Shown here in pieces: positions 1 through 44,654 of a stretch of DNA of 64,000 nt. Under the pieces are notes generated by a model, which made no database searches, was not told the origin of the DNA, and was given only the letters and a program-made list of their open reading frames with translations. Each line of letters begins with the position of its first letter. The first letter of the stretch is position 1. The stretch is from the IMG/VR virus record IMGVR_UViG_3300035182_002586, positions 372,001 through 436,000 of that record. One strand, given 5' to 3'. Both the position numbers and the translations under genes were made by a program.

Positions 1-341
1 CAGTCCTCCGCTGTCAGATCATACATGTACTGTCTGGAGGGCAGACGTTCCACAGAGAGAACCTGTACAGAGGCACTGTGACTCGCAACCTTGGTGTCTG
101 TGCTCAGTCTCTCCGTCTCTACCTTGGTGCGCGGGGTCAGAAACACCCGGTGACCACCAGTCAGGACAGACGAACCCTTGGAGGTCGTCACCTTGAGGAT
201 CGATTCCGGACCCACCTCAGCTCGATGAACGTGTAGGACGCGCTTCCACTCCGACTGACCCTCGGGGGAGACAGACTGCACACGCAACGACCCTTGTTCA
301 AAGGCCGCTCGGATCTTCTCGCGTTGCAAGGGGCTCAGCAT
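1..341 (-). CDS. C-terminal half (IntC) of a split intein, presumably followed by the C-extein beyond the window edge (partial)
   Basis: Not in the ORF track because it runs off the edge. Manual translation from ATG 341 (GAAGGA SD upstream): MLSPLQREKIRAAFEQGSLRVQSVSPEGQSEWKRVLHVHRAEVGPESILKVTTSKGSSVLTGGHRVFLTP...VQVLSVERLPSRQYMYDLTAED. It contains intein block B (LTGGHRVF) and block F (YMYDLTAE). Confidence 0.85.
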   Translation of the reverse strand, partial: MLSPLQREKIRAAFEQGSLRVQSVSPEGQSEWKRVLHVHRAEVGPESILKVTTSKGSSVLTGGHRVFLTPRTKVETERLSTDTKVASHSASVQVLSVERLPSRQYMYDLTAED

Positions 342-1263
342 CGAAGTCCTTCTCCGTCCAGATGAGGAAGTCCCACCCCATGCGCGCTGCATAGGAAGAA
401 GCTGCTTCGAGCCTGCGCGTCACACGGTGGTCCGGGGGGAGGCTCAGGGTCCAGCTCGCCTTCACTTCGACCAGAACGATGGACCCGTCATGGTGGGTCA
501 CAAAGAAGTCGGGAAGGATCCAACGACCATCTGGCAGCTCTACCCGTGGCTCAAACAAGTACTCTTTCACAGACGGGTCACGATCCAGAAGGCGCACCAC
601 AACCCGCTCATAGCTGCTGCGCGTCCAAATGAGTGCCCGTGTGCACTTCTTGGGGGACACCCACTCGCCGCGACCCCGCTGCCACTTTTCGGGGTTGTCC
701 AACATACGTTGTGTCTGCGCCGCAGACCGGAGCGCCCGCACATCCTCTCGGTGATGATACGCCAGAAGACGGCCACGCTCCTCAGGACGTTGCCACCTGC
801 GAAGCGCGGATTCACGGCGGCGATGCTTTACATCGGGCCTCTGTGCGACAAGGCGTAGCGTTTCCCGCTCCTCAACAGACCGAATACGACCACGGTGAAA
901 GTCGAACGAGCCGGCCTCCCACGCTTTCTGCATCCGCAATGAGAGCCACGGCTTCTCTCGGCCCTTACCTGCACGGCCAACGACAGCAGCGTTTGCGGCC
1001 CGGTTAGCTCTGGAGGCGTCGTTCCACGCTGCCTTGGTCAGTCGTTGTATGGCAGCGAGTGACAAGCCGGTCAGAGACATCATCCGCTTCCAGGGGGTCC
1101 CTGCGGCATGTAACTCTGTGACCAAAGCACTGCGTTTCTGGGCAACCCCCAAAGGAGGGCGACCGGGCTTTCGAAACACCTCCCAAGAAATACCGTGCTT
1201 CGCAAGCAACGGTACCAGTTCAGGGGGCGGGAGTAGTTCCGTGGATCGCCTCGTAGAGATCAC
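298..1263 (-). CDS. Free-standing PD-(D/E)XK (TnsA-N-like) endonuclease, probable homing endonuclease
   Basis: C-terminal RSSYE...ILPDFFV...VLVEVKA...AARMGWDFLIWTEKD; basic repetitive N-terminal DNA-binding region; lies between the split-intein halves. Confidence 0.75.
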   Translation of the reverse strand: MISTRRSTELLPPPELVPLLAKHGISWEVFRKPGRPPLGVAQKRSALVTELHAAGTPWKRMMSLTGLSLAAIQRLTKAAWNDASRANRAANAAVVGRAGKGREKPWLSLRMQKAWEAGSFDFHRGRIRSVEERETLRLVAQRPDVKHRRRESALRRWQRPEERGRLLAYHHREDVRALRSAAQTQRMLDNPEKWQRGRGEWVSPKKCTRALIWTRSSYERVVVRLLDRDPSVKEYLFEPRVELPDGRWILPDFFVTHHDGSIVLVEVKASWTLSLPPDHRVTRRLEAASSYAARMGWDFLIWTEKDFDAEPLATREDPSGL

Positions 1264-1726
1264 GGATAGTAACTACCATTTTCTCGCCCCCCACGTCAAG
1301 TTCGACCTCTTCCTCCCCACCTACACAGTTGTCGCGGAGCAGGATGCGCAGGCGGCGCATCAGGTCGCTCTCGATCTGCGTGAACGTCGAGGTGCCCATG
1401 AGCGAGGCGGTCACCTTGTCGACGACCTCGAACTCCTGGAGCACCTGCTGGATCGCTGCCCCGACCGACTGCCTGAACGTCCATCGGATGCGGTAGCTGC
1501 CGATGTTGGCGTCGAGAGGGATGATGATCGACGAGTAGTACTCGCCGACCGACGGGTTCACCGGCGTCCGCTTCGCGGGACCGAGGAGGACCTCCATCCC
1601 CGTCGTGTAGTCGTAGAGGGCGTAGGAGATCTCCGCGGCGTTCACCGGCACGTCAGACGACGAGACGAGGAAGATGTTGAGGTCCTCCCGCCCGAGCTGC
1701 TGACCCTTGTAGAACGCCGTGGACAT
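1220..1726 (-). CDS. Putative virion protein N-extein (133 aa) fused to a 35-aa N-intein (IntN)
   Basis: ...LRILLRDN|CVGGEEEVELDVGGEKMVVTIRDLYEAI; Cys1 codon at 1327-1325; block A-like pattern; codon usage shifts abruptly at the junction. Confidence 0.8.
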   Translation of the reverse strand: MSTAFYKGQQLGREDLNIFLVSSSDVPVNAAEISYALYDYTTGMEVLLGPAKRTPVNPSVGEYYSSIIIPLDANIGSYRIRWTFRQSVGAAIQQVLQEFEVVDKVTASLMGTSTFTQIESDLMRRLRILLRDNCVGGEEEVELDVGGEKMVVTIRDLYEAIHGTTPAP

Positions 1727-1730
1727 CGAT

Positions 1731-2846
1731 TCACTCTTCCGACATGCTCTTGAGCCCGTCGATCACCGACTTGATCTTTTTGTGATCGACCTTCTGCGGG
1801 TTTGCTCCGGGAAGCTTCATGCCCTCCGGCAGGTCGAGATGCTGCTCCAGACTCTTGATCGTCGAGTCGATCTTCTTCTTGGAGACTGCTTCGCCCTTTT
1901 CGAGCGCACGGGCGATCTCGTTCATCGAGCCGCCGCCCTGCGAGAATTCGTACAGCTTGTTCGAGAGGTCGCGCACTGCACCAGCATCACCCTTGTGCTT
2001 GTGCATCTTGTCGCCGCCGCTCTCCCCGCCCGACTCTTGGCCCTTGCTCTCTTCCTTCTTCTCGGGCTTGCCCTTTCCACCGGGCTTGCCGACGGTGTGC
2101 TTCGACTTGTCGGCTTTCGGGTGCTTCTTGAGGTAGGCGTCGAGCGCCTCCTGCGTCGGGAAGGTCGTGGCGGTCTTCTCCGTCGAGGCTTCGACGAAGC
2201 GCGCGACGACGTTGCGGACCGTGAGGGCGTGCTTGAACTCGAAGGCGGGATCGCGCGGCATGTTCTTGTCCTCGTACAAGGGGATTTTTGCTTGCGGTTG
2301 GGGCACCAGGAGTACCCGGGGACGTAGCCCAAAGGCCCGGAAGGTCATGAGCCGAGTGTTCCCGCCCACGAGAACGGTGCTGCCATCCGGCCGCTGGATG
2401 ACCATGGGCGTTTCCATGCTGCCGCCCAGGCCAAGGATCAGGTCTCGGATGTCCTTGTCGTAGAGGCGGGCGTACTCGATCGCCTTGTCGATCGTATCGG
2501 TGCCCCACGAGTCCGTGTTCTGCATCGTGGACCACATGGCGTCCGAGAGCACCACCGTGGGGGCTGTCCTGGCTGCTTCGAGTAGGGCGTCACCGGGGAC
2601 GCCTACGAGCTTGCCCGCGCGCTCGAACTCCTCCCGTTCGGCTTCGAGGTCGGGAAGCCTCCATGTGGTCTTGTGGGCGAGGAGGGAAGCGCAAGCGACC
2701 TCCAGTGGGGTCGGCTCGACGAACGCGTTGTGCACGGTCTGATACTCGTCTGGAGCCGCCCGCAGCGTGGCGCGCGGAACCATCATCGTCTGCCCCGTGG
2801 CGAGGTGACGAACGAGCACGTCCTCTGCTGCCTGTCGCTGCGCCAC
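1731..2846 (-). CDS. ParB/Sulfiredoxin-like domain protein with Lys-rich C-terminal region
   Basis: GTG start overlapping the upstream TAG, with GGAGG RBS; motif TPMVIQRPDGSTVLVGGNTRL. Confidence 0.55.
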   Translation of the reverse strand: MAQRQAAEDVLVRHLATGQTMMVPRATLRAAPDEYQTVHNAFVEPTPLEVACASLLAHKTTWRLPDLEAEREEFERAGKLVGVPGDALLEAARTAPTVVLSDAMWSTMQNTDSWGTDTIDKAIEYARLYDKDIRDLILGLGGSMETPMVIQRPDGSTVLVGGNTRLMTFRAFGLRPRVLLVPQPQAKIPLYEDKNMPRDPAFEFKHALTVRNVVARFVEASTEKTATTFPTQEALDAYLKKHPKADKSKHTVGKPGGKGKPEKKEESKGQESGGESGGDKMHKHKGDAGAVRDLSNKLYEFSQGGGSMNEIARALEKGEAVSKKKIDSTIKSLEQHLDLPEGMKLPGANPQKVDHKKIKSVIDGLKSMSEE

Positions 2847-3610
2847 TATTCCTCCCAACCGTACTTGCACTTGCGGGGGGTCAGATCGTTCGGGTCGTAC
2901 GCGAGAACCGCATCCAAAACCACAAACGGGTACTCTTGCTTGTACACGGGGCCGTTCTGGTAGCGCTGCCACTCCCAACGGACGACCCACTCACCCGGCT
3001 GCCCGCCCTCACCTGCGATGCCCACCGCGTAGAAGTCGCCTACGTCGGACATGATCGGGCTGCGATCGGCTGGACCCACCCTCTGCTTGATCCCCCCGGG
3101 AAGGACCTGGAAGAACGTGAAGTTGATGGCGAAGGGAGCGTACCGGTCGCCCGAGTTGGTCCGGAGGTAGAACGGCAGCTCGTCTTTCGAGATGAACTGC
3201 CCCCACCGCAGCTCGATGTAGGGGGGAGGCGGGCACGGGCAGATCGGCGGAAGGTGCAGAACCTCGGCATACCCTGCGAGACTCGACGTGCCCTCCAACG
3301 GAAGGGGGACGCCTGCGTCGAAGAAAGAACCCTGGCCGTCAACGTCACCGCTCGTGAAGGCCCAGATGATGGCGGGACCAACGAGCGACACACCCCCCGT
3401 GCCGGCGGTCGTCCCCGACGCGTCGATACGCAGGGGGTCGTTGAGATCCCCTTGCCCGAACGTGTACCCCGAAACGTACCAGACGTTACCAGGCGCGCTG
3501 AGCACGTCACCGGACCCAGAGACACCCTGGAGGATGTTCCGGACGATGAGAGGGACGACGCCGAGAAGCTCCCCAACGCCGCCGACGGTGCCGCCAGCGT
3601 CAATCAGCAT
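2846..3610 (-). CDS. Putative virion structural protein (C-terminal Ig-like domain)
   Basis: Gly-rich N-terminus; C-terminal domain resembles the N-extein at 1328-1726. Confidence 0.55.
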   Translation of the reverse strand: MLIDAGGTVGGVGELLGVVPLIVRNILQGVSGSGDVLSAPGNVWYVSGYTFGQGDLNDPLRIDASGTTAGTGGVSLVGPAIIWAFTSGDVDGQGSFFDAGVPLPLEGTSSLAGYAEVLHLPPICPCPPPPYIELRWGQFISKDELPFYLRTNSGDRYAPFAINFTFFQVLPGGIKQRVGPADRSPIMSDVGDFYAVGIAGEGGQPGEWVVRWEWQRYQNGPVYKQEYPFVVLDAVLAYDPNDLTPRKCKYGWEE

Positions 3611-3623
3611 GGGAGGTCACGCC

Positions 3624-4007
3624 CTAGCTTTCGGTGGCGACGAGCTGTCCTGCGGGGAACCGCAACTGGTCATTGATGCCGATCGTCCGCGGAGACGAGA
3701 GGTTCGCGAAGTACAGCATGTTGCCCCCCGTCGGCGCGTCGAAGAGTGCGAAGGCGACGACAGTGCCGTACGGCGAAGACGCGAGCGGGAAGACCACATC
3801 TGCGCTACTCGCACAGACCTGACCCACCGGTGCGGCGAAAGGGGCAGGCTGACGGGTGTAACCCCCACCACTCACTTCCACACCACCACCGCCTGAGGTT
3901 GGCGCCGTCGTGAAGAGGGCGACATAGACCGTGGCGGGGGGAGTGAACGGGATGTTGCGGAGGGCCGCGTTCAGAACAACCGTGTCGAGGTAGAGGCTCT
4001 TAGGCAT
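3624..4007 (-). CDS. Phage tail fibre/minor tail-type protein
   Basis: VYVALFTTAP...EVSGGGYTRQ...FALFDAPTGGNML motif typical of small tail proteins; paralog of 5678-6079. Confidence 0.7.
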   Translation of the reverse strand: MPKSLYLDTVVLNAALRNIPFTPPATVYVALFTTAPTSGGGGVEVSGGGYTRQPAPFAAPVGQVCASSADVVFPLASSPYGTVVAFALFDAPTGGNMLYFANLSSPRTIGINDQLRFPAGQLVATES

Positions 4008-4040
4008 GGCTCTATGAGCCCCGGCGCACAAGAGGAAGAA

Positions 4041-4445
4041 CTAGACCGTGCCGGGTTTGACGAACGAAGGCTTGAGACCCTGTTCGATCGTCGGAGACGC
4101 TGGGAGGACGTCGTAGTCCTGTGCGAGGATTTGCTGCCCAACCGGGTAGGAGATGAGCAGACGCCAGTACCCCACAGCGCTCGGACGGAACCGGACCCCG
4201 TAGAATCCAGGCGCTCCCGGGATGGCGTTCCAGTAGATCGACCCCGAAGTGGCCTTCACGTCCGAGATCGACGTGCCATCCACGAAGGGCCACGGCTGCG
4301 CTTCGTTGTTGTAGAAGAGGTTCATCACGAGCTGCGATGGGGTGAGCCCCACCACACGTGTGAACCCGTCCGTCTGGAAGAAGTCGGACTGGTCGAACAC
4401 CAGAGTGTTGACGTAGACCTGACGACCACGTGTCGTGTTCGGCAT
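4041..4445 (-). CDS. Hypothetical virion protein
   Basis: 134-aa beta-rich ORF in the structural block. Confidence 0.6.
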   Translation of the reverse strand: MPNTTRGRQVYVNTLVFDQSDFFQTDGFTRVVGLTPSQLVMNLFYNNEAQPWPFVDGTSISDVKATSGSIYWNAIPGAPGFYGVRFRPSAVGYWRLLISYPVGQQILAQDYDVLPASPTIEQGLKPSFVKPGTV

Positions 4446-4451
4446 CGCGGT

Positions 4452-4670
4452 TCAGCCTTTCGTCGGAACTACCCGCTGGAGCACCACCGTTCCGAGGTCG
4501 ATCGTGCCGGGCACCGGGATGGGAGAAGCTGCTGGGGGAGCTTGTCGCACCGGTTGGGGATCGGTCTTCCCGACGATGGCAGCGCTGAGGGACATGCAAA
4601 GACGCCCGGAGGCAGCGCAGTCCGCCCCACAGTCGATGTTCGCTTCGATTCCGATCTGGGCCATGTTCAT
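4452..4670 (-). CDS. Hypothetical protein
   Basis: 72-aa ORF tightly packed in the operon. Confidence 0.45.
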   Translation of the reverse strand: MNMAQIGIEANIDCGADCAASGRLCMSLSAAIVGKTDPQPVRQAPPAASPIPVPGTIDLGTVVLQRVVPTKG

Positions 4671-4671
4671 C

Positions 4672-5271
4672 CTACGGGCGGCGCGGCGCCCGGACCTTGA
4701 GTTTCGGGAGTGCGGGAGAGTACATGATCTGACGCGGCGGGACGGCTGCCTTGCGGAATCCGGGTGCTGGCGTGTAGCGCACGAGCATCATGTTCGCCGT
4801 GACTGTGGCTCCGCTGCTCAGTGCTGCGTTGACCGGCTTCACGTAGATGGGGTTCGCCACCACCGTCGCGTCGCTGGTGAGGATCACCGTCACCGAGTCC
4901 AGCTCCGTCAGAAGGGCCACCACTGCGGCCGTCGGAGAGAGAGCACCCGTAACGCCTACGGTGAGGAAGCCTGTGGCCCCTACCACCGCATCCGGGAACA
5001 TCGCTGCGTCTGCGGCGTACGTTGCCGTGCCGTCCGGACTCCCGCCCGCTGAGGGGGCGAGGTTCGAGAGGAGAGAGATCTGGAGAACCACCCCTGCGGA
5101 CAAGTCCACGTCCGGAGCAAGCGCTGCGTCCAGAGAGTAGGTCGCCGTGGGGTCGGCCGTCGTCCCCGCTTCCGGTTCGAGCGCCGCATCCACGACGTAC
5201 TGGATCGCGGTGTCTCCGAGATAGGAGGCATCGGGGAACAGGTCAGCAGTTACGTCGACGACAGGCATCAC
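4672..5271 (-). CDS. Ala/Thr-rich putative structural protein
   Basis: Low-complexity A/T/V/D-rich ORF translationally coupled to its neighbours. Confidence 0.55.
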   Translation of the reverse strand: MMPVVDVTADLFPDASYLGDTAIQYVVDAALEPEAGTTADPTATYSLDAALAPDVDLSAGVVLQISLLSNLAPSAGGSPDGTATYAADAAMFPDAVVGATGFLTVGVTGALSPTAAVVALLTELDSVTVILTSDATVVANPIYVKPVNAALSSGATVTANMMLVRYTPAPGFRKAAVPPRQIMYSPALPKLKVRAPRRP

Positions 5272-5678
5272 GGCCTCCGGTGAACAGTGAGTGTGTACGA
5301 GGGCGTGTTAGGGCCGGGAATCACCACCCCTGGACCGGGAACGACAGGGGGAGCAGCTCTAGGCTTCGCCTTCATGAGTGTCGGGACTGCGGTAAGTCCA
5401 GACGCACCCACTAGGGTGGAGGTCACGATCCGATAGAGTTCCAGGTCCGACGTGACCGTGGCTTCGGGCCGCAGATCGGCCACAGAGGTGTTGAGGGGGA
5501 AGGGGTCGGACGCGAAGCTCGCGTCCCCGCTGGGGGTGGCAACGAGGTCCGTTGCCACCCCACCCCCAGGGACCATACCAGAAGCGGGGGAAAAGGCCGC
5601 GATGAGGACGTAGGAAGCAGTGGCACCCACCGAAGCGGATGCCCCTGCCTCCAACCCCGCCGTGACCTCGACCTGCAT
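5268..5678 (-). CDS. Ala/Ser-rich putative structural protein
   Basis: Likely start MQVEVTAG at 5678, overlapping the upstream TGA. Confidence 0.55.
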   Translation of the reverse strand: MQVEVTAGLEAGASASVGATASYVLIAAFSPASGMVPGGGVATDLVATPSGDASFASDPFPLNTSVADLRPEATVTSDLELYRIVTSTLVGASGLTAVPTLMKAKPRAAPPVVPGPGVVIPGPNTPSYTLTVHRRP

Positions 5679-6079
5679 CAGGTCTCGGTGACGGTGAGCG
5701 CGCCCGTGCCGAACGACACCTGGTCGCCCGTGCCCACGGTCTTGCTCGTGCCGAGCGCGCCGTAGTAGAGCGCGTTGCCCGCCGTCGGGTCGTCGAGGAT
5801 CGCCATCGCGACGATGGTGCCGTAGGGCGCCGTCGCGACCGGGTACACGACCGGAGCCGAGTTCGCCACCGCGCCTGCCGGCGACGGAGCGCCGAACGTG
5901 ATGGCCTGGCGCGCGTACGCCGTGCCAACAGTGGTGACCTCGGTGCCCGAGCCGACCGCGTTCGTCGGGGCCACCGTGTAGAGCGCCGCGTAGACCGTCA
6001 CGGGTGACGTGTAGCTCGTGTTGCGGAGGACCGCGTTGACGATTGCGCTGCGGAGATAGTCGTTCTTGGCGTTGGCCAT
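5678..6079 (-). CDS. Phage tail fibre/minor tail-type protein
   Basis: VYAALYTVAPT...EVTTVGTAYARQ...ILDDPTAGNALYYG; paralog of 3624-4007. Confidence 0.7.
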   Translation of the reverse strand: MANAKNDYLRSAIVNAVLRNTSYTSPVTVYAALYTVAPTNAVGSGTEVTTVGTAYARQAITFGAPSPAGAVANSAPVVYPVATAPYGTIVAMAILDDPTAGNALYYGALGTSKTVGTGDQVSFGTGALTVTET

Positions 6080-6143: not shown

Positions 6144-6686
6144 CTACTCCGTTACCGGACGCGCCTTCCAACGCTCGATGTACTCGATCGCCGCACGAAG
6201 AACCTGAGGGTCTTCCTTCGCGTACCCGATCATCACGTTGCAGCTCCAGTGGATGAGACCCCTCACACACTTGCCGCAGGACTTCCGGTCAGCACAGCAG
6301 CTTCGATCGTGGTCCACGACCACAGAGTCCAACTGCTTGCCCGAACGCTCCATGGCCCCACCACAGAGCGCACAGAGCCCCTTCTGCGCTCCCCACATCG
6401 CATCGAAGTCGATGTTGAAGCGACCCTTCCGCTGCATCGCCCGAAACTGGTCCGGGTTCCGCAGTTGCCAGGCACGAGAGATCGCTGACGCCCGACCGGG
6501 GTTGGCGTCACGCCACGCCTTCGATCGGGCGTTCGCTTTTTCAGGGTTGGCCGCCGCACGAGCGGCGTTCTCTCTGTTCACACACGTCTTACAAGCCCCA
6601 CGAGGCTTCCCCAACCTCTTGGAGACCTTGTGGAAGTCCTTCTCTTCATCCTGAGGTACGCCGCACTTTGTACAGATGCGCTGCAT
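6144..6686 (-). CDS. Endonuclease VII-family (HNH-type) free-standing endonuclease
   Basis: QKGLCALC...VVDHDRSCC...CGKCVRGLIHWSCNVMIG...LRAAIEYI; N-terminal CxxC; atypical codon usage. Confidence 0.85.
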   Translation of the reverse strand: MQRICTKCGVPQDEEKDFHKVSKRLGKPRGACKTCVNRENAARAAANPEKANARSKAWRDANPGRASAISRAWQLRNPDQFRAMQRKGRFNIDFDAMWGAQKGLCALCGGAMERSGKQLDSVVVDHDRSCCADRKSCGKCVRGLIHWSCNVMIGYAKEDPQVLRAAIEYIERWKARPVTE

Positions 6687-6709
6687 ACAACGAATGCCAG
6701 ATAAGAACT

Positions 6710-6985
6710 TTATTGCATGTGGCAGATGCTTTTCAACGATTTTACGTTGTGGGCATAAGGCTGCGCGGCCACCTTGCCGGTGTTGTTGAACCACGCGGTC
6801 TTCAGCTCGTCGACGTTCGAGATCGACGTGTCGAAGAAGAAGTAGATCCGCCCGTCGTACCGCTCGTGCCGGATCAACTCCACGCCTGCTGTCTGCAAGT
6901 ACGCGGCGAAGTACAGGTCGGGCGTGCAGAACTCGTTCGGCTTCGTGGCCGGGCCACGACCGTTGCCATTCCTGGGCATCGACAT
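6710..6985 (-). CDS. Small conserved phage protein (DUF5659-like)
   Basis: PDLYFAAYL...RIYFFFD motif. Confidence 0.55.
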   Translation of the reverse strand: MSMPRNGNGRGPATKPNEFCTPDLYFAAYLQTAGVELIRHERYDGRIYFFFDTSISNVDELKTAWFNNTGKVAAQPYAHNVKSLKSICHMQ

Positions 6986-25561: not shown

Positions 25562-28500
25562 CTACACGAGGAGGCAGACACCGCCCGAGCAGGCGACCTC
25601 GCCCTTGAGGTCCGTGTCGTCGCTGTCCTCGACCATGAGCGTGTAGTCGAGGGGCTCGTAGCTCTCCAGGATCGCGTTCCAGCGAGCCTCGTCCACCGGG
25701 GTCACGATGGCCTCGTTGGGCGCGAAGGCGTAGTCCTTGTCCCCCGTGCTCGCCAGGAGGCTGACGCCCGTGAAGAACTCCCGGTTCTCCCACAGGTAGT
25801 CCGCCACCTTGTCCCACTCGTCCGGGCGGACCGTCACGGTGTTCGAGACGTTGTGGTTGAGGCCCGGCGAGTACGTGGAGTCGGCCGTACCGGCGAGGAC
25901 CCAGTTCTGCTGCGTGGACTTCACCATGTCGAGGAACGGGATGGCCGTGATGTCGTCCTTGATCGTCGCCTCGGGGGGCGCCTCGACCGGGAACTCGATC
26001 ACGTACTTGCCGTCGGGCTTCCTGACGCACATGTGCGGGTTCTTGGCCTTGAACGCCTGGAAGACCGGCTCCAGCTCGTCGGCGGTGACGCGGCGGATGT
26101 ATCGTCTGGCGTGGTGGGCGTGGTGGCCCGAGCCGACGCACCCCAGCTCCAAGCTGGTCGTGCCGGAGGGCTTCACGCAGGTCGTACGGGCAGCGGGCCG
26201 GATCCCGATGCGAGCCGACAGCTCGATGTTCCACTGCTTGATGAGCCCCGCGACCTCACGCTGGTATTCGGGGTTGCACGCGATGTGCGGTGCGTCGAGC
26301 ATCCCGGTCATGCCGATACCGAGAAGCGACTCGCGCTCGGCGATCACCTCGGAGACGGCGCCGAGGTAGGGCATCTTCGTGTACCCTGCCTGGAGGGTCC
26401 CGATGATCGTGGCAGCCCTGGCGGCCTCCTTGAAGTCCTCCAGGCTGGTCAACCGGGCCGCGTTGATCTCGCAGAGGTTGCAGAAGGCCCACCCCGTGTG
26501 AGACGAACCAAGGGCGACGGTGACACCCTTGGCAGCGAACTTCGCCTGCATCTCGGCGTCCACGACCACCTTCGGGTTCATCCCGATCTCACAGCACGGG
26601 TTGGTGCCGTAGTCGTAGTCGCTGGTGAAGTAGAAGCCGGGCTCGCCCCACTGGCGAGTCATGTTGAAGATGCGCTTGAACTGCTTCTTCTTCACCTCGT
26701 CGCGCTTGAGCACGACGGAATTGTTCGAGTTCGCGAGCCACGGCTCCTTGGCGAACCAGTTGCCCGTCTTGATGTGCATCATCTCCGAGTCGTCGAGGGA
26801 GAAGAGGCAAATCATCGCGGACCGACGGATGCCGCCGGAGAGGACCGCATCAGCCGCGTGGCACATGATCCGGTGGCACTCGACCGAGCGGAGCTTGCGA
26901 CCCTGCGCGCCGCTCAGGACGCCGCGGATCTGTTCCAGGGAGTCCTTGAGCTTGAGGTGGCCGGGGGCCCGACCACCGCTGGTGCGCAGAGGCGTCCCTG
27001 CGTCCCGGATCAGGTGATAGCTGATCTCCAGGTTCACGCCGTCGAGGAAGCTCTGGACGAGGGCCTTGAGGCCGTCCGCCCACCCCTCGATGGTGTCCTG
27101 CACGACGTGGTGCCGAACCTTCTTCGGATCGACGTACGCGATGGCGGGGAGCTTCTCGATGTGATCGAACTGGACCGAGTAGCCCACGCCGCAACCGGAG
27201 AGGAGAAGGTAGAGGGCCTCTGAGAAGACCTCCATGCGGTCGACGAGGCTGAACGAGCAGTTACCCGTCACGATGCCGTTCGGCAGGACGAACGAGTGAT
27301 CGTCCTCGACCTCAAGACACCAGACCGTCTCGTATCCCGCTTCCTTGATGGACTGCACGCTGTAGGGAGACGATGGGGCATCCCCAAAGCCGAGCACGAG
27401 GCCGAACCGAGAGGTTTCCGGGCGGATACCGAAGTTCGTCTCCTGGCCAGTCAGGTCGTCCTCACGGGTGATGTACGCCCCAACAGCCGGGAAAACCTTA
27501 CGGATGAAGTCGATGGCTTCGCCACCCGTTGCCTGGATGCCGTTGAAGGGGCTCGGCCAATCCCCGTTCTCGTTCTTGTGCCCGTCCGCATCGAGGAAGC
27601 CCCGCACGAACGCCATGACGTTCTCGAAGCCGTCCTGCTCGATGCTAGGCAGCGTCTTGAGATACTTCCCCGTGTAGGCCATCGCGTCGCCGCCGAAGGT
27701 TGCAGGAGAACTCGTCGCAAAGCCCAACTCCTTGAACCGCTCCAAGAAGCGTTCCTTGTCCTTCCCGCAGAGACGGACCATCGAGTAGGTCGGCTCCCCC
27801 TCGCGACCCTTCACGAGGGTACCGTCGCCGTAGACATACCCGAGAGCCCAGTAGTACCGGGCCTCGGGATTGGCCTCGGTGTAGTCCCAGGCCCCGACGA
27901 GACGCGGAGCCTTTGCGAGCTTGTGCTTGACGGAGAGGTCACGGGTACGCTCCCCGTTCTCCAGTAGCCACTGGTGGTCTCGGGTCGACCGCACCGTGAA
28001 CGAAGACCGCCCCCGGCCGATGGTGACCTCGAAAAGCTGCTGCGTCCCGTAGCTCTTCACGACGGCGGACTTCCACGCCCCCGTGTGCGTTAGGACGGTG
28101 ATCTTATCACCGTCCTTGAAGTCGGAGAACTTCTTGACCCCTTGCGTCGTGATGAACTCCGTCTCGACCCCCATGCAGTTGTAGATACGGTTGTTGTTCG
28201 CGAGGATGGCCTGCCCACCGAACTGCATCGAGCGCATCGACGGCAGCACACGCTTCTCCCGCACCCGGTCGAAGGCCCACCGGATTTCCTTCTGCATCTC
28301 GGGGTATACCTCCAGGTGCATCCCCTCGATGCGGGCGACCGTCTCGGAGTAGACCTCGCGGCGCTTCTGCCTCGGCAGGTAGCGTGCGTACTTCCCCGCG
28401 TGGATGTAGTCGGAGATCGCCTTGGGGTCCGGGGTCTTCGCAGTTCGACCCTGACGGGCTTCCGCCCGCTGATGCCGGTAAAGAATGAACGCCTTGGCGA

Positions 28501-28792
28501 CGGCGAACTGACCCTGCCGCATGAGCGCCGTCTCGACGGCATCCTGCACGTTCTCGACGCAGACGACTTCTTCCGTCAGTGCATCGATGACCGTGTTGAG
28601 GGTCCGATTCAGTGCCCTCTCGTCGACGCTTCCCTTGGCTTCCTCCCATGCGCGGCTGATGGCGCGACGCAGCTTGGACGTGTCGAACGGTTGGTGAACC
28701 TTACCGTCGCGCTTTCGGATGCTCTGCACCACCGCCCGCATCGAAGGGGCGTGGTCGTTCGAGATGGCCTGGATAACCGCAGCAGCTTGCAT
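25562..28792 (-). CDS. nrdJ: Class II (B12-dependent) ribonucleotide reductase with N-terminal ATP cone, intein-containing
   Basis: ATP cone (IRKRDG...FD..KL..AI...VENVQDAVE); GGIRRSA; GTNPCCEI; TCVKPSGT; C-terminal CSGGVC. Confidence 0.93.
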   Translation of the reverse strand: MQAAAVIQAISNDHAPSMRAVVQSIRKRDGKVHQPFDTSKLRRAISRAWEEAKGSVDERALNRTLNTVIDALTEEVVCVENVQDAVETALMRQGQFAVAKAFILYRHQRAEARQGRTAKTPDPKAISDYIHAGKYARYLPRQKRREVYSETVARIEGMHLEVYPEMQKEIRWAFDRVREKRVLPSMRSMQFGGQAILANNNRIYNCMGVETEFITTQGVKKFSDFKDGDKITVLTHTGAWKSAVVKSYGTQQLFEVTIGRGRSSFTVRSTRDHQWLLENGERTRDLSVKHKLAKAPRLVGAWDYTEANPEARYYWALGYVYGDGTLVKGREGEPTYSMVRLCGKDKERFLERFKELGFATSSPATFGGDAMAYTGKYLKTLPSIEQDGFENVMAFVRGFLDADGHKNENGDWPSPFNGIQATGGEAIDFIRKVFPAVGAYITREDDLTGQETNFGIRPETSRFGLVLGFGDAPSSPYSVQSIKEAGYETVWCLEVEDDHSFVLPNGIVTGNCSFSLVDRMEVFSEALYLLLSGCGVGYSVQFDHIEKLPAIAYVDPKKVRHHVVQDTIEGWADGLKALVQSFLDGVNLEISYHLIRDAGTPLRTSGGRAPGHLKLKDSLEQIRGVLSGAQGRKLRSVECHRIMCHAADAVLSGGIRRSAMICLFSLDDSEMMHIKTGNWFAKEPWLANSNNSVVLKRDEVKKKQFKRIFNMTRQWGEPGFYFTSDYDYGTNPCCEIGMNPKVVVDAEMQAKFAAKGVTVALGSSHTGWAFCNLCEINAARLTSLEDFKEAARAATIIGTLQAGYTKMPYLGAVSEVIAERESLLGIGMTGMLDAPHIACNPEYQREVAGLIKQWNIELSARIGIRPAARTTCVKPSGTTSLELGCVGSGHHAHHARRYIRRVTADELEPVFQAFKAKNPHMCVRKPDGKYVIEFPVEAPPEATIKDDITAIPFLDMVKSTQQNWVLAGTADSTYSPGLNHNVSNTVTVRPDEWDKVADYLWENREFFTGVSLLASTGDKDYAFAPNEAIVTPVDEARWNAILESYEPLDYTLMVEDSDDTDLKGEVACSGGVCLLV
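27260..28177 (-). mobile_element. Intein (306 aa) with LAGLIDADG endonuclease in nrdJ
   Basis: RIYN|CMGVETEFIT...STRDHQW...LGYVYGDG...FVRGFLDADG...VWCLEVEDDHSFVLPNGIVTGN|CSF. Confidence 0.93.

Positions 28793-33845: not shown

Positions 33846-33846
<1 letters not shown>
33649..33846 (-). CDS. Small conserved hypothetical protein
   Basis: MPTFVE...IDDWIDAWH...LHAYLGLTWEEY; coupled to the groEL stop. Confidence 0.6.
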
Positions 33847-35927
<2,081 letters not shown>

Positions 35928-40730: not shown

Positions 40731-43700
40731 CTAAGCACCCGCCTCGATCATCCCGATCAAGTCCATAACCGAGGGCTCGTGATGAACGACCGCCGGTTTC
40801 CTGTGGGTGGACCCCACGCGGAAGACCTCCTCATCCCGAGCCCTCTCTCGCGCCGAACCCTCCGTCAACATGGCGTAGAGCTGCTTGCCGATCGAGAGGC
40901 CCGCAAGGTACTCGTCTTCCGCCACGCCCGCCGCCTGGAGAGCAGCCTCGGGGTCGAGGCCGTCCGTGGAGACGGAGACGGCGACCTTGTGCATGAGCAG
41001 GTCGTGGAGCTGTTCCTGGAGAGTGTCGACGTAGATCGGCACGTGCACCCGCGTCTCAATCTTCTGCCCGATGCGATCGATGCGACCGATCGCCTGACGA
41101 AACACGACCGGGTTGCACGCCGGGTTCTGCATCCACACTTCCGTCGCGAAGTGCACGAGATTGTTGAGCCCCGTCTGGATGCACACAGGGTTGGTGACGA
41201 GCACCTGGCGCTTCTTCTTGACGATCTCGCGATCGATCCAGTCCTGACGCTTGGCCGTCGACACCTTGTCGGCGTAGAGGACCGGGACCGTCTCACCGAT
41301 GCGCTCGGAGATGATGCGCGCGAGGCGCGGCAGCAGCGTGATGTGCCACGCAAAGACCATCACGTTCCGACCCTCGGCCAGCTCCGCCTCGATGGTCCGG
41401 AGCATCCACTCTTCTTTCGCGAGGAGGGTCGAGGGGTCGAGAGGGGTTGCTGCCGCCACGAGCGCCGAACCCACGGACTCGGGGTAGCGGACCTCGAAGA
41501 CGCCCTTGTCGCAGTTGCCCACGTCTCCCGTCGCGCGGTCGAGGTACGACGGCAGCTCGGAGAGCTGACCGAAGAGCTTTCCCGCCATGTCCGGCTCGAA
41601 CTGGTCCTTGCGTACGGCCGCGAGAACTGCATCGAGGAGATGACGGTACTGCTTCATCACGTCCGTCTCCGCCTGGATGAGATGACGGTGCTGACGGCAC
41701 GGCGGAAGGTCGATCGCGAGGTCAGTCTTGTGCAAAGTGACCGACATCGGGAGAAGATGACGGAGCAAGAACAGGGGAAGGACGCCGGGGGCGTTCCCCA
41801 CGAAGCGCTCCTGACGCTCGACGCGATCGGTGTGCGAGCCGAACTCGACGATCTTGCCGGTTTCCTTGTCCTTGTCCTCGACGAGCCGCTTGCGGTAGCC
41901 GTAGCGATCGACGAACTTGGTGCGCTCGCTGCGGTCGAACTCAGTACGGAACGCGGGGGAAAGGGCCCAGAAGTTCGTGAACAGGCTCTCCGCGTAGCCG
42001 TTCATGATCGTCCCCGTCATCAGGATCGTGGGGAGGCCGAGCCCCGTGAGACGGTGCGCCGACCGCTCCTGCGCCGACCCGTCCGTCGCGTACTCATGCC
42101 CTTCGTCCAGCACGAGGAAGTCGAAGAGGCGCGGGTGACGCATCGAGATGAGGCGGGCGAGGGGGTAGCGAAGGGGGGCGGGGCTCGCCTGGAAGAGAGG
42201 CTCGCCGCACTCGGGCCCCATCGGGAAGTGCCCGAGCGAGCACAAGGAAGCGAGCACTTCCCGGGCGAGGCGCATGGACCCGGCCGCGTGTTCCGCGACG
42301 ACGAAGTGCCCGTCCCGGAACGCCAGCTCGCCGGCCCCCATGAAGTTGGGGAGCCCCTTGCCCGAAGCCAGCTCGCCGATCCGGCGATTGATGTCCCCCC
42401 ACGGCCCGCTGCCGCCGTAGCTGCCGTAGCCGTAGTACCCATGGGTCGGTACGGCGCGCATCTCCTCGATGAGGCTCATCTGGAGGTCACTGCCCGGGGG
42501 GAGAAGCAGCACGAGGTCTCGCGAGAGGTCGCGGCCACCGCCCCACCCCTCCTCTGCCCACATGAGCAGGCGGATGGCCCGAACGAGACGTTCCGTGTCG
42601 TTCGCCGCAAGAAGCGTGTTCAGAAGAGCCCGGTCCAACTTCTCCCGGGCCCCCTCACCTTCGAGGCGAGCCGTCACGATCTCCGCAAGAACCCGGTCGA
42701 CGATCTCGCTCGGGATCCCTGCCCACACCGGCGCCGCGCCGCCCTTGATCCGTGCCGCGTACCTCACCTTGCGGGCACGGCCCGCCCGACCCGACATCAG
42801 AGCCGTCACGTTGCCGTCGGTCGGGGCGTGCGGCTGGAGGAGCACGGCGAGGCGGTGCGCAATCGCGGCCTTGGAGCAACCCAGCGTGTACGCTTTCGCC
42901 TCGCAGCGAGCGCGTTTCTTCACGAGATCCACGTCCGTCGGAACCGGAGCCCCACACTTCGGGCACGCCCCCGTCGAGACCCCCTCCCACCCGTGACCGA
43001 GCTTGGCCGACTCTCGCGAGAGGACCGCCACGACCGGCTGATCCATCGGGATTTCGGTGAGGGCGTCGACATCCGCCACGTTCTGGAGAACGCGGACCGT
43101 CGCCTCGGGAACAACCGCAGAGATCTCGTTCTTCCACGAGGTCAGGAGGTGCGGCGGACACAGGATCAGGATCCGCTTCGCGCCGATGGAGCGCGCCGCC
43201 ATGAGAGAGACGGTGGACTTCCCCGACCCGATCTCACCGAGCAGGATCGCCGTCTTGCCGCGACGAGAAGCCGCAGAGGCACCCGTGCCCCCAAGGAGCT
43301 TTACGAGGGCGCGCGAGGCGTGAGCCTGCGCCGAGAAGAGCCGACGGGGCGACGACGCGAGCGTGATGCTCTCCGCATCCGTGCGGGGGTCGTAGAGAAT
43401 CGGGCACTGGCGTTCCATCACCGCCATGAGGCTTTCGCCGTAGTGCGCGAGCAGGTCTGCCACCGTCATCGACTCGACGGACGGAGCCTTCGATGCTTCC
43501 GTGCCCGTCTTGAGCACGTGGTAGTGATGCGTGTGGAGGTCGAGAACCGTGGTGACCAGCTTCGGCTGCTGGACCTGGACGACGCCCCGCACTTCCCCTT
43601 CCTTGTTCTTCTTCTCTTCGATGGTCCGGAACTCCCGGTCGAAGACGCCCTTCACGAGCAAGGGCGGGAGCCGAGTGTTCTTCGACTCGATACGGGCCCC

Positions 43701-44654
43701 GTTGAAGATGCCGCTGGCGATACCGGCCGCGATGTGCGCCGGCCGCGGGGGCATCGCTACGGGGTACTTCCGGAGAAGCATCTCCGCCACGGGCACGTCG
43801 GGGATGATACCGGGCGTCGGCACGAGAGCGCCCGCGCGCGTCGTCTGCATCCAGGGGCGAGCCTTGGCCGTGAGCGTCGCCACATCGACCGGACGCATGA
43901 CCCACTCGGTCAGCCCGTAGCTACCGTGGTAGTCGACCGTCGCGGGGACCGTCGTGCGCTCGACTTCACCACCCTCCGGAAGGACGGGCATTGCGGACGG
44001 GTCCGACGCCCACTTGAGGACGGCCAGGACAGCATCGGGGTCCGGGTTCAGCAGGGGCGCTGAACGCTTGACGCCGATCAGGACAACCTGCTTGTAGCTG
44101 TCCCAGTCCGGATCCGGGAAACGGAAGCACCGGAGAGACTCGAACTCCCGGCTAAGGGTCTCGGCCGACGCCTTGAGCGCCGAATAGGGGACTACGAAAA
44201 CGAGAACGCCCGAGGTTGCCAGCGTCCCGAGGAAGCGGACGAGGAAGCGTTGCTCCAACCGCCCGTGGATCGGGTCGAGGTCGTACGGGGGGTTGAGGTA
44301 GAGCAGGGAGACGCCACGGCTATACCCGTGCGCGTAGGTGACCCGGAAGGCGTCTCCGTGCACCAGGCTGCGAGACAGGTTGTAGGAGATTCCCTCGCAG
44401 GTCTTCTTCAACGCGTTGAAGCGCGTCTCTTCCATCTCGCACGCGTAGAGGTGGCTGTCTCGGGACCAGTTGTCCCCGCCGCCGCGAAGCTCCTTGATGA
44501 GGTCCAGGACGGCCGAACCCTCACCCGCGCAGGGGTCGAGGAACGCCGGGGTGCGGGCTTCTTCTGGCAGGGCCAGGACCGCCGCGATGCGCGGGATCAG
44601 ACGGCTCGGGGTGGGGTAGTACCCCGCCACTGCCACGCTCTCAAGCCTCGCCAT
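40731..44654 (-). CDS. DNA methyltransferase (DUF6094-like)-SF2 helicase fusion
   Basis: GYYPTP, LDPCAGEG and LNPPY; Walker A GEIGSGKS; DEGH; TGT; QTGLN; QAIGRIDRIGQ. Confidence 0.88.
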   Translation of the reverse strand: MARLESVAVAGYYPTPSRLIPRIAAVLALPEEARTPAFLDPCAGEGSAVLDLIKELRGGGDNWSRDSHLYACEMEETRFNALKKTCEGISYNLSRSLVHGDAFRVTYAHGYSRGVSLLYLNPPYDLDPIHGRLEQRFLVRFLGTLATSGVLVFVVPYSALKASAETLSREFESLRCFRFPDPDWDSYKQVVLIGVKRSAPLLNPDPDAVLAVLKWASDPSAMPVLPEGGEVERTTVPATVDYHGSYGLTEWVMRPVDVATLTAKARPWMQTTRAGALVPTPGIIPDVPVAEMLLRKYPVAMPPRPAHIAAGIASGIFNGARIESKNTRLPPLLVKGVFDREFRTIEEKKNKEGEVRGVVQVQQPKLVTTVLDLHTHHYHVLKTGTEASKAPSVESMTVADLLAHYGESLMAVMERQCPILYDPRTDAESITLASSPRRLFSAQAHASRALVKLLGGTGASAASRRGKTAILLGEIGSGKSTVSLMAARSIGAKRILILCPPHLLTSWKNEISAVVPEATVRVLQNVADVDALTEIPMDQPVVAVLSRESAKLGHGWEGVSTGACPKCGAPVPTDVDLVKKRARCEAKAYTLGCSKAAIAHRLAVLLQPHAPTDGNVTALMSGRAGRARKVRYAARIKGGAAPVWAGIPSEIVDRVLAEIVTARLEGEGAREKLDRALLNTLLAANDTERLVRAIRLLMWAEEGWGGGRDLSRDLVLLLPPGSDLQMSLIEEMRAVPTHGYYGYGSYGGSGPWGDINRRIGELASGKGLPNFMGAGELAFRDGHFVVAEHAAGSMRLAREVLASLCSLGHFPMGPECGEPLFQASPAPLRYPLARLISMRHPRLFDFLVLDEGHEYATDGSAQERSAHRLTGLGLPTILMTGTIMNGYAESLFTNFWALSPAFRTEFDRSERTKFVDRYGYRKRLVEDKDKETGKIVEFGSHTDRVERQERFVGNAPGVLPLFLLRHLLPMSVTLHKTDLAIDLPPCRQHRHLIQAETDVMKQYRHLLDAVLAAVRKDQFEPDMAGKLFGQLSELPSYLDRATGDVGNCDKGVFEVRYPESVGSALVAAATPLDPSTLLAKEEWMLRTIEAELAEGRNVMVFAWHITLLPRLARIISERIGETVPVLYADKVSTAKRQDWIDREIVKKKRQVLVTNPVCIQTGLNNLVHFATEVWMQNPACNPVVFRQAIGRIDRIGQKIETRVHVPIYVDTLQEQLHDLLMHKVAVSVSTDGLDPEAALQAAGVAEDEYLAGLSIGKQLYAMLTEGSARERARDEEVFRVGSTHRKPAVVHHEPSVMDLIGMIEAGA

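Follow-up and report, generated by a model that had tools for sequence, protein, structure and literature searches.

A predicted atypically split intein, fractured by a TnsA-like endonuclease gene, in a conserved gene of huge phages

At the left edge of a 64,000-nucleotide stretch of DNA (hereafter the window) from the IMG/VR virus record IMGVR_UViG_3300035182_002586, a gene of the virion region lies broken into three consecutive open reading frames (ORFs), the first of which ends in what appears to be the N-terminal piece of an intein (IntN), the second of which encodes an endonuclease-like protein and the third of which begins with the C-terminal piece of the same intein (IntC). Every gene in this part of the window lies on the minus strand, and the features of the fractured gene, which had been described in an earlier reading made from the letters alone (the sequence-only reading), were all confirmed in their places (Table 1). 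The first ORF does carry a Cys-first tail directly after ...LRILLRDN, the middle ORF is present at the length described, and the third ORF, with its motifs LTGGHRVF and YMYDLTAED, runs for 113 stop-free codons to the window edge. Each of the three ORFs is +1 relative to the preceding one, and the arithmetic of the 44-nt overlap proposed at either end of the middle gene is right (1263 against 1220 for the first and second ORFs, 341 against 298 for the second and third). The Shine-Dalgarno-like motif GGAGAAGGA precedes a conserved ATG-CTx (Met-Leu) start of IntC, and both the motif and the ATG are embedded in the conserved WTEKDF codons of the endonuclease gene.

Table 1. Positions of the parts of the fractured gene, in window coordinates or in those of the leftward contig extension (L001); GC3 is the G+C fraction at third codon positions
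Feature	Coordinates	Strand	Basis or remark
N-terminal ORF, 168 aa	1726-1220	minus	ends with 35-aa Cys-first tail directly after ...LRILLRDN, then TGA
N-extein, 133 codons, immunoglobulin-like (Ig-like) beta-sandwich domain, C-terminal ...LRILLRDN	1328..1726	minus	ORF, homology, model, GC3
Predicted IntN, 35 aa (Cys1, block A, first helix); TGA stop at 1220-1222	1223..1327	minus	alignment to contiguous intein, GC3 drop
Putative endonuclease gene, maximal ORF 321 aa, separate frame	298..1263	minus	Pfam PF08722 and catalytic motif
Predicted catalytic residues of the endonuclease	D252 at 510-508; E266-V-K268 at 468-460	minus	invariant in 25 homologues
Shine-Dalgarno-like motif, 5 nt upstream of IntC ATG	347..355	minus	read from sequence
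Predicted IntC, first 113 of 128 codons, ATG 341-339, block B LTGGHRVF and start of block F YMYDLTAED	1..341	minus	stop-free to window edge
Predicted IntC, continuing left of the window to ...LVSN	L001 1369-1752	minus	contig extension left of window
C-extein, 186 aa, first residue Ser+1	L001 808-1368	minus	contig extension

The block G that had been expected beyond the window was found in the extension. An exact 32-mer from the window edge added 1411 nt to its left, and placed the locus near 370 kb of the 529-kb IMG/VR contig of the same name. Here the third ORF reads ...YMYDLTAEDWHNFVLHRSGMLVSN/SPDRNYHFRPP... (a solidus marks a splice junction, here and below) and stops 186 residues on, block G taking the form ...WHNFVLHRSGMLVSN/SPDRNYHF. 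IntN thus has 35 residues and IntC 128, IntC and the C-extein together make up a polypeptide of 314 residues, and the mature host protein would have 133 + 186 = 319.

In the window and its extension together the set of intein residues is complete, comprising Cys1 directly after ...LRDN, the TxxH motif, block F, and a terminal Asn with a Ser nucleophile at +1 (...LVSN/S). The terminal Asn, on whose presence the sequence-only reading had made its case depend, is found in all 83 site-matched homologues, followed by Ser in 72 of them and Cys in 11; TxxH is retained in 78 of the 83, and Cys1 in each of the 20 homologues for which the N-terminal junction is available. A HMMER alignment to the Mja KlbA intein spans blocks B and F, with LTGGHRVF as block B, and a profile of the family searched against PDB sequences gave as its top matches the Mja KlbA (E=1e-4), PI-PfuI, Pho RadA and Spl DnaX inteins. 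Pfam and NCBIfam models found no match on the N-terminal ORF, and the intein family is a divergent one.

The fold was approached through a natural contiguous relative of 162 residues (L014:3893-4378), with 54% identity to either intein piece of the window; the alignment for its model consisted of IntN and IntC from eleven loci, the window among them. The model has a mean predicted local distance difference test score (pLDDT) of 95.8 and a predicted template-modelling (TM) score of 0.89, and its sole weaker block, residues 31-40, is the loop in which the window intein is split. In a Foldseek search of the PDB, the top 50 matches are without exception inteins or HINT domains, with TM scores of 0.7-0.84 for most of the intein matches, in line with the HINT fold that had been expected of the joined halves. 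The window IntN aligns to residues 1-33 of this intein and the window IntC to residues ~35-162; in the model IntN supplies strands 1-2 and the first helix, IntC starts with the second helix, and the break falls in the loop between the two. Judged by this contiguous proxy, the window intein would be a class 1 intein with the HINT fold. The break lies between blocks A and B, at about residue 33 of 162, and the split is an atypical one, the canonical region for endonuclease insertion being that from block B to block F.

Searches with the C-terminal ORF (892 relatives) and, among cluster representatives, with the N-terminal ORF (253 relatives) show homologues of the host protein in four forms. Intein-free proteins of 296-323 residues, to which residues 1-133 of the N-extein are homologous and the window C-extein is 47-78% identical, have no CVGG... 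tail and continue as ...LRDN-NPDRNYHF..., as would be expected if that tail belonged to an intein. Others carry a 162-residue mini-intein at exactly the window's insertion point, and the remainder are free-standing N-halves of ~160-175 residues with a terminal IntN of 29-40 residues, or free-standing C-halves of ~290-300 residues that start Met-Leu... with IntC. In other fractured loci IntN has 29-35 residues and is 60-84% identical to that of the window. Comparison of ...LRDN/C...N/SPDRNYHF... with the intein-free form shows a precise in-frame insertion, which falls within the motif that is best conserved in the host protein. At the +1 position the intein-free homologues mostly have Asn, otherwise another non-nucleophile, and never Ser or Cys. 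The arrangement is far from singular, as the sequence-only reading had taken it to be, since 90 of the 120 top protein clusters are free-standing, intact C-halves.

The codon usage of the locus changes at the same junctions. GC3 is 0.955 in the N-extein (0.95-1.0 along it) and falls sharply exactly at Cys1, to 0.571 in IntN, a shift that had been noticed in the sequence-only reading; it is 0.66 in the endonuclease gene and 0.70 in IntC (0.5-0.75 along the two), and is back at 0.85-0.95 right after the C-terminal splice junction (Asn/Ser). The composition of the element is foreign to the host gene, and the coincidence of its boundaries with the splice junctions suggests that intein and endonuclease arrived jointly, as one element.

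The middle gene appears to encode a TnsA-like nuclease of the PD-(D/E)xK type with an intact catalytic motif. Its C-terminal 100 residues match Pfam PF08722, Tn7_TnsA-like_N (E=2.6e-8; 34.7 bits, cut-off 26.5), and there is a weak match to NCBIfam TnsA_like (4.5e-10); neither Vsr nor DUF559 is matched. In an alignment of 25 homologues, residues S216, E219, E238, P251, D252, E266 and K268 are invariant, and the wider pattern RSSYE ... YE ... LPDF ... EVK ... WTEK is invariant or nearly so, while the N-terminal region has a conserved segment resembling a helix-turn-helix. The same ORF matches phrog_218 (E=2.1e-9), annotated 'head closure', a label that is probably wrong for a TnsA-like endonuclease and may have arisen through guilt by association with neighbouring virion genes. 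A search for relatives of the endonuclease returned 60; among those whose gene context was inspected, three (L053, L054, L058) lie in the full fractured arrangement, at identities down to 35%. In four others (L052, L055-L057) the endonuclease gene is directly upstream of the IntC-extein gene with no N-half nearby; for L055, L056 and L057, on contigs of 135-158 kb that include NCBI GCA_029556615.1, there is none within 10 kb on either side. The genomes of this lineage may hold the two halves at distant places, or may have lost the N-half.

The three-gene arrangement recurs in at least 15 independent large-phage loci, from different samples and metagenomes and at ~35-70% amino-acid identity. The states of the site were surveyed by tblastn with the five pieces of the locus against 58 fetched loci. 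The gene is split by an intact TnsA-like gene in the window and in L002/L003, L004, L005, L007, L008, L009, L010, L016, L053, L054 and L058, the last being a published 485-kb uncultured phage (LR745208.1). In L013 the endonuclease is frameshifted, in L006 it is truncated to its last 92 residues, and in L012 a remnant of 47 residues is left, with the intein still in two frames; in L011 an HNH endonuclease stands in place of the TnsA-like one. The 162-residue mini-intein is contiguous in L014, P0039, P0057, P0097 and P0121, and some 35 viral loci, together with P0102, P0111, P0114 and P0118, are intein-free. The endonuclease is thus sporadic among otherwise collinear alleles, being intact, frameshifted, truncated, deleted or replaced at one and the same site. 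The frame relations of the three parts vary as well, from +1/+1 in the window to +1/-1 in L004 and -1/+1 in L006. In a tree of the intein the contiguous forms are scattered, with five changes of state, at least two of which are forced by well-supported branches.

We conclude, with a probability that we put at roughly 85%, that the locus is a fractured gene in which a class 1 mini-intein has been split by a free-standing endonuclease gene and whose halves would trans-splice. On this interpretation a conserved gene of huge phages, encoding an Ig-like N-terminal and a helical C-terminal domain, carries a mini-intein at ...LRDN/xPDRNYHF..., and a gene for a TnsA-like homing endonuclease would have settled inside it, in the loop that follows the first helix, close to residue 33, which is a non-canonical site for an endonuclease. 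Three polypeptides would be translated independently, namely N-extein with IntN (168 residues), the endonuclease (~300-321 residues) and IntC with C-extein (314 residues), the last from a ribosome-binding site and ATG within the 3' end of the endonuclease gene. The 35-residue IntN would then dock on the 128-residue IntC, completing the HINT fold; an N-S acyl shift at Cys1 would be followed by passage of the acyl group to Ser+1 and cyclisation of the terminal Asn, and a peptide bond would finally join the exteins. In co-infections the endonuclease would cleave alleles that have no endonuclease gene, enabling the element to spread.

Several points weigh against this conclusion. We infer both the trans-splicing and the nuclease activity from sequence, and the HINT model is that of the contiguous relative, not of the window's own two chains. 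The PF14890 intein model scores below its cut-off of 35.8 bits, both on the window IntC (19.9) and on the contiguous homologues (22.7-24.4). The penultimate residue of the intein is Ser in place of the usual His, as it is in 74 of the 83 homologues (His in five); inteins without a penultimate His are known to splice, and the substitution is compatible with membership in class 1. For the endonuclease, a search of PDB sequences with the single sequence and with a 25-sequence profile found no match to TnsA, Vsr or I-Bth0305I, and the sole match, helix-turn-helix-like, was to a designed repeat protein. Its start has two candidates, GTG 1263 and TTG 1209, and the upstream 44-nt overlap hinges on the former, the most upstream; because conservation among homologues begins only at about residue 10, this overlap may be shorter or absent should the gene start at TTG 1209. 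A scan for promoters and terminators around the locus found nothing above expectation. Finally, the pairwise dN/dS ratios (nonsynonymous to synonymous substitution rates) of ~0.14-0.22 in IntN, IntC and both exteins, which speak for functional halves, are rough values, since dS is saturated in many pairs.

Could the intein fragments instead serve as high-affinity docking modules, holding the two parts of the host protein together without splicing? The halves of split inteins do bind tightly, the penultimate His is absent here, and there is a documented case of a fragmented phage ribonucleotide reductase put together without splicing (PMC3045599). Docking alone, however, has no need of the strict conservation of Cys1, TxxH and terminal Asn, nor would it explain why Ser or Cys at +1 co-occurs perfectly with the presence of the intein, and a 163-residue domain left standing in the best-conserved motif of the host protein would probably be disruptive. 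We regard such non-covalent assembly as very unlikely.

There is also only a slender chance that the gene is dead, inactivated by the endonuclease insertion, with halves that are decaying and a function that is dispensable or supplied by a paralogue. A candidate paralogue exists, in that the neighbouring ORF has a domain homologous to the N-extein, and L055-L057 have no N-half in the vicinity. Yet none of the fractured loci examined has a half whose ORF is not intact, the dN/dS ratios are low in exteins and intein parts alike, the terminal Asn is retained without exception, the intact C-halves dominate the top clusters, and what the paralogue has in common with the host protein is the Ig-like domain alone, at 24-32% identity.

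Stop codons are sometimes recoded in huge phages, and the ORFs overlap by up to 44 nt with each in the window +1 to the last. It is nevertheless scarcely credible that the locus has a single polypeptide as its product, in which an endonuclease domain is nested in a contiguous intein and whose frames were separated by assembly frameshifts, stop reassignment or two programmed ribosomal frameshifts, since the stop-and-restart layout recurs in all those independently assembled loci, the differing frame relations exclude a conserved frameshift signal and assembly error, reading through the TGA leads into an unconserved frame that meets a TAA ~200 nt later, L012 keeps its intein parts in different frames despite having lost the endonuclease, and the insertion point is not the canonical one for a nested endonuclease. 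Programmed frameshifting and stop recoding were rejected on the variable frame relations and the unconserved read-through frame.

What, then, is the protein that would be assembled in this way? The sequence-only reading had called it a non-enzymatic virion protein. Scans of profile libraries detected no enzyme domain in it, as that reading would have it; a virion role is plausible, if weakly supported, on the basis of a weak PHROG match (E ~1e-4 to 1e-5), gene context and the fold model. The AlphaFold model of an intein-free homologue has an Ig-like sandwich at residues 1-102 (pLDDT >90), followed by helices and a conserved extended tail, with a mean pLDDT of 77. Searches of the PDB with the host-protein profile and with this model returned generic Ig-like matches only. 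Among the BFVD matches of the model are gp165 and gp160 of Bacillus phage G, both uncharacterised, as well as BppU-N-like domains. The weak PHROG match is to phrog_17327, 'head-tail connector' (E=5.7e-4 for the window C-terminal ORF; eight of 32 homologues match, the best at 2.4e-5); the intein-free homologue gp319 of Tunturiibacter phage Tunturi_5, 28% identical, bears the same annotation, and a gene for a Gp80-like fibre or head protein lies 1.9 kb upstream of the host gene. Among protein collection names for the homologues there is nothing beyond 'hypothetical protein', and a megablast of window positions 1-6000 against GenBank phages gave no match. The neighbouring ORF at 2846-3610 (minus strand) encodes a 254-residue protein with an N-terminal homologue of the N-extein domain (24% identity, E=1e-6), and this paralogue recurs upstream in many related loci. 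Some large proteins (P0173, P0218) contain the domain 7-12 times in tandem.

Two further insertion sites were seen in the same host gene. In L016:2634-6282 (IMGVR_UViG_3300035150_000015) it lies in three pieces with two endonuclease genes, in the order N-extein with IntN (165 residues); TnsA-like endonuclease; IntC, middle extein and a second short IntN (248 residues); DUF559/Vsr-like endonuclease (323 residues); second IntC with C-extein (209 residues). The second intein of this locus, ...DEF/S...AHN/SYSIGG, is also atypically split, and the nucleophiles at its splice junctions, Ser1 and Ser+1, are non-cysteine. The third site (...PDRNY/S...HN/S or T) is six residues downstream of the window's and is occupied in P0158, P0201, P0170, P0183, P0192, P0199 and P0246, both by contiguous inteins and by inteins split after ~30-35 residues.

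These observations bear on a broader claim, to which as a whole we give slightly better than an even chance: that the window intein belongs to a large family of atypically split inteins, undescribed in the literature found and all residing in one conserved gene of huge phages. The claim is a joint one. It holds that there are three sites (RDN/C, PDRNY/S and DEF/S), each with contiguous inteins and inteins split after ~30-35 residues; that at least three unrelated endonuclease families (TnsA-like, HNH and Vsr/DUF559-like) do the splitting, the TnsA-like one being unreported as an intein-associated homing endonuclease in the literature searched; that in some genomes the protein would be assembled from three polypeptides through two orthogonal trans-splicing reactions; and that the inteins at PDRNY/S and DEF/S, which have Ser1 and, in the +1 position, Ser or Thr, would be natural non-cysteine atypical split inteins.

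Directly downstream of the C-half, at L001:1-800 (minus strand) and likewise in L002, L011, L012 and L053, is a gene whose product has DUF7487 repeats and a motif resembling a zinc finger; in L011 and L012 the C-terminal end of its product resembles, by eye, a nuclease motif. Over the last ~60 codons of the C-terminal ORF, GC3 declines to 0.35-0.65, a drop that may have been left by co-conversion with a second mobile endonuclease gene.

Elsewhere in the window, all on the minus strand, are several features of related interest. The ribonucleotide reductase at 25562-28792, which is of class II (B12-dependent, RTPR-like) and has an ATP-cone, contains a contiguous intein; the NCBIfam model for the intein C-terminal splicing region matches its residues 490-512 above cut-off. 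An ORF resembling endonuclease VII and HNH proteins (6144-6794; PHROG E=2.7e-21) probably represents a further free-standing homing endonuclease, in the same gene block as the fractured gene. A Cpn60/GroEL-type chaperonin (33846-35495; E=1.3e-69) and a 1307-residue protein with DUF6094 methyltransferase and SNF2-like regions (40731-44654) are consistent with a very large phage genome.

Why might such a locus matter? Natural split inteins with a short IntN are few (AceL-TerL, GOS-TerL, VidaL and PolB16), and there is a demand for them, since so short a piece can be made by synthesis. In the family of the window intein, natural variants number many dozens, with identities of 30-75%, which suffices for designing a consensus and for tests of orthogonality, and its sister inteins in the same gene use Ser1 with Ser+1. 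One gene also displays the whole homing cycle, from the empty site through the mini-intein to the split form with a live endonuclease, and on to endonucleases that are decaying, lost or replaced, with three target sites and up to two fractures. The TnsA-like nuclease joins the repertoire of likely homing endonucleases, and the locus suggests that a probably structural phage protein may tolerate assembly by trans-splicing.

The closest known systems are the fractured genes described by Dassa et al. (2009; PMC2677866), in which the endonuclease gene and IntC overlap by 6-69 bp. The gp41-1, NrdJ-1 and IMPDH-1 loci share with the window the order N-extein with IntN, endonuclease ORF, IntC with C-extein, in phages, and an endonuclease gene whose 3' end overlaps the start of IntC (by 44 nt here), the invading element supplying stop and start codons. 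They differ in that their break, with one exception, is at the canonical region, giving a long IntN and a short IntC, whereas the window intein is broken after ~33 residues; in that their endonucleases are of the GIY-YIG, HNH or Vsr-like families rather than TnsA-like; and in that their hosts are enzymes of nucleotide metabolism and replication, whereas the window host has no detectable enzyme domain. Inteins have also been reported in phage portal, minor capsid and tape-measure proteins (bioRxiv 10.1101/2025.01.02.630785). The window adds a new example of a split intein; because inteins in structural proteins and overlaps of endonuclease gene and IntC had already been described, its novelty is smaller than the sequence-only reading implied. 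A search of the literature returned nothing relevant on split inteins in huge phages, and no report tying a TnsA-type nuclease to inteins or homing.

In the position of its split the window intein resembles the atypical split inteins of phage large terminases, AceL-TerL (25 and 104 residues), GOS-TerL (37 and 115 residues) and the consensus Cat-TerL (PMC11766414). These too are natural and phage-derived, with a short IntN (35 residues here) and a long IntC (128 here), and in them too the split appears to follow the first helix, an equivalence deduced without alignment. The host gene is different, and so are the nucleophiles, Cys1 and Ser+1 here as against Cys/Cys or Ser/Cys there; no TerL intein is among the PDB sequence matches of the window family, no TerL sequence having been compared directly. 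VidaL (PDB 6vgv) and PolB16 OarG (15 and 168 residues) have an ultra-short IntN of ~15-16 residues (PMC10189870). Like the window intein they are atypically split and were mined from metagenomes, and VidaL ranks 30th among the Foldseek matches (TM 0.65-0.72, 14% identity); they differ from it in IntN length and in their hosts, and the similarity is no closer than that to other inteins.

The endonuclease, for its part, may be compared with two known groups. With TnsA of Tn7-like transposons (PF08722) it shares the nuclease family match and an invariant E...PD...ExK pattern, and it differs in having no TnsB or TnsC partner and no transposon context, being a stand-alone gene within an intein and having its own helix-turn-helix-like N-terminal region. 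With the Vsr-like or EDxHD homing endonucleases (the I-Bth0305I family; PMC3239194) it shares the PD-(D/E)xK superfold, a free-standing place in fractured genes and a bipartite build of DNA-binding and nuclease parts, and it is set apart from them by its profile matches; in L016 a true DUF559/Vsr-like endonuclease fractures the same host gene at another site. New in detail are the gene that hosts the intein, the family to which the endonuclease belongs, an intein family of this size and diversity, and the three insertion sites with double fracturing in relatives.

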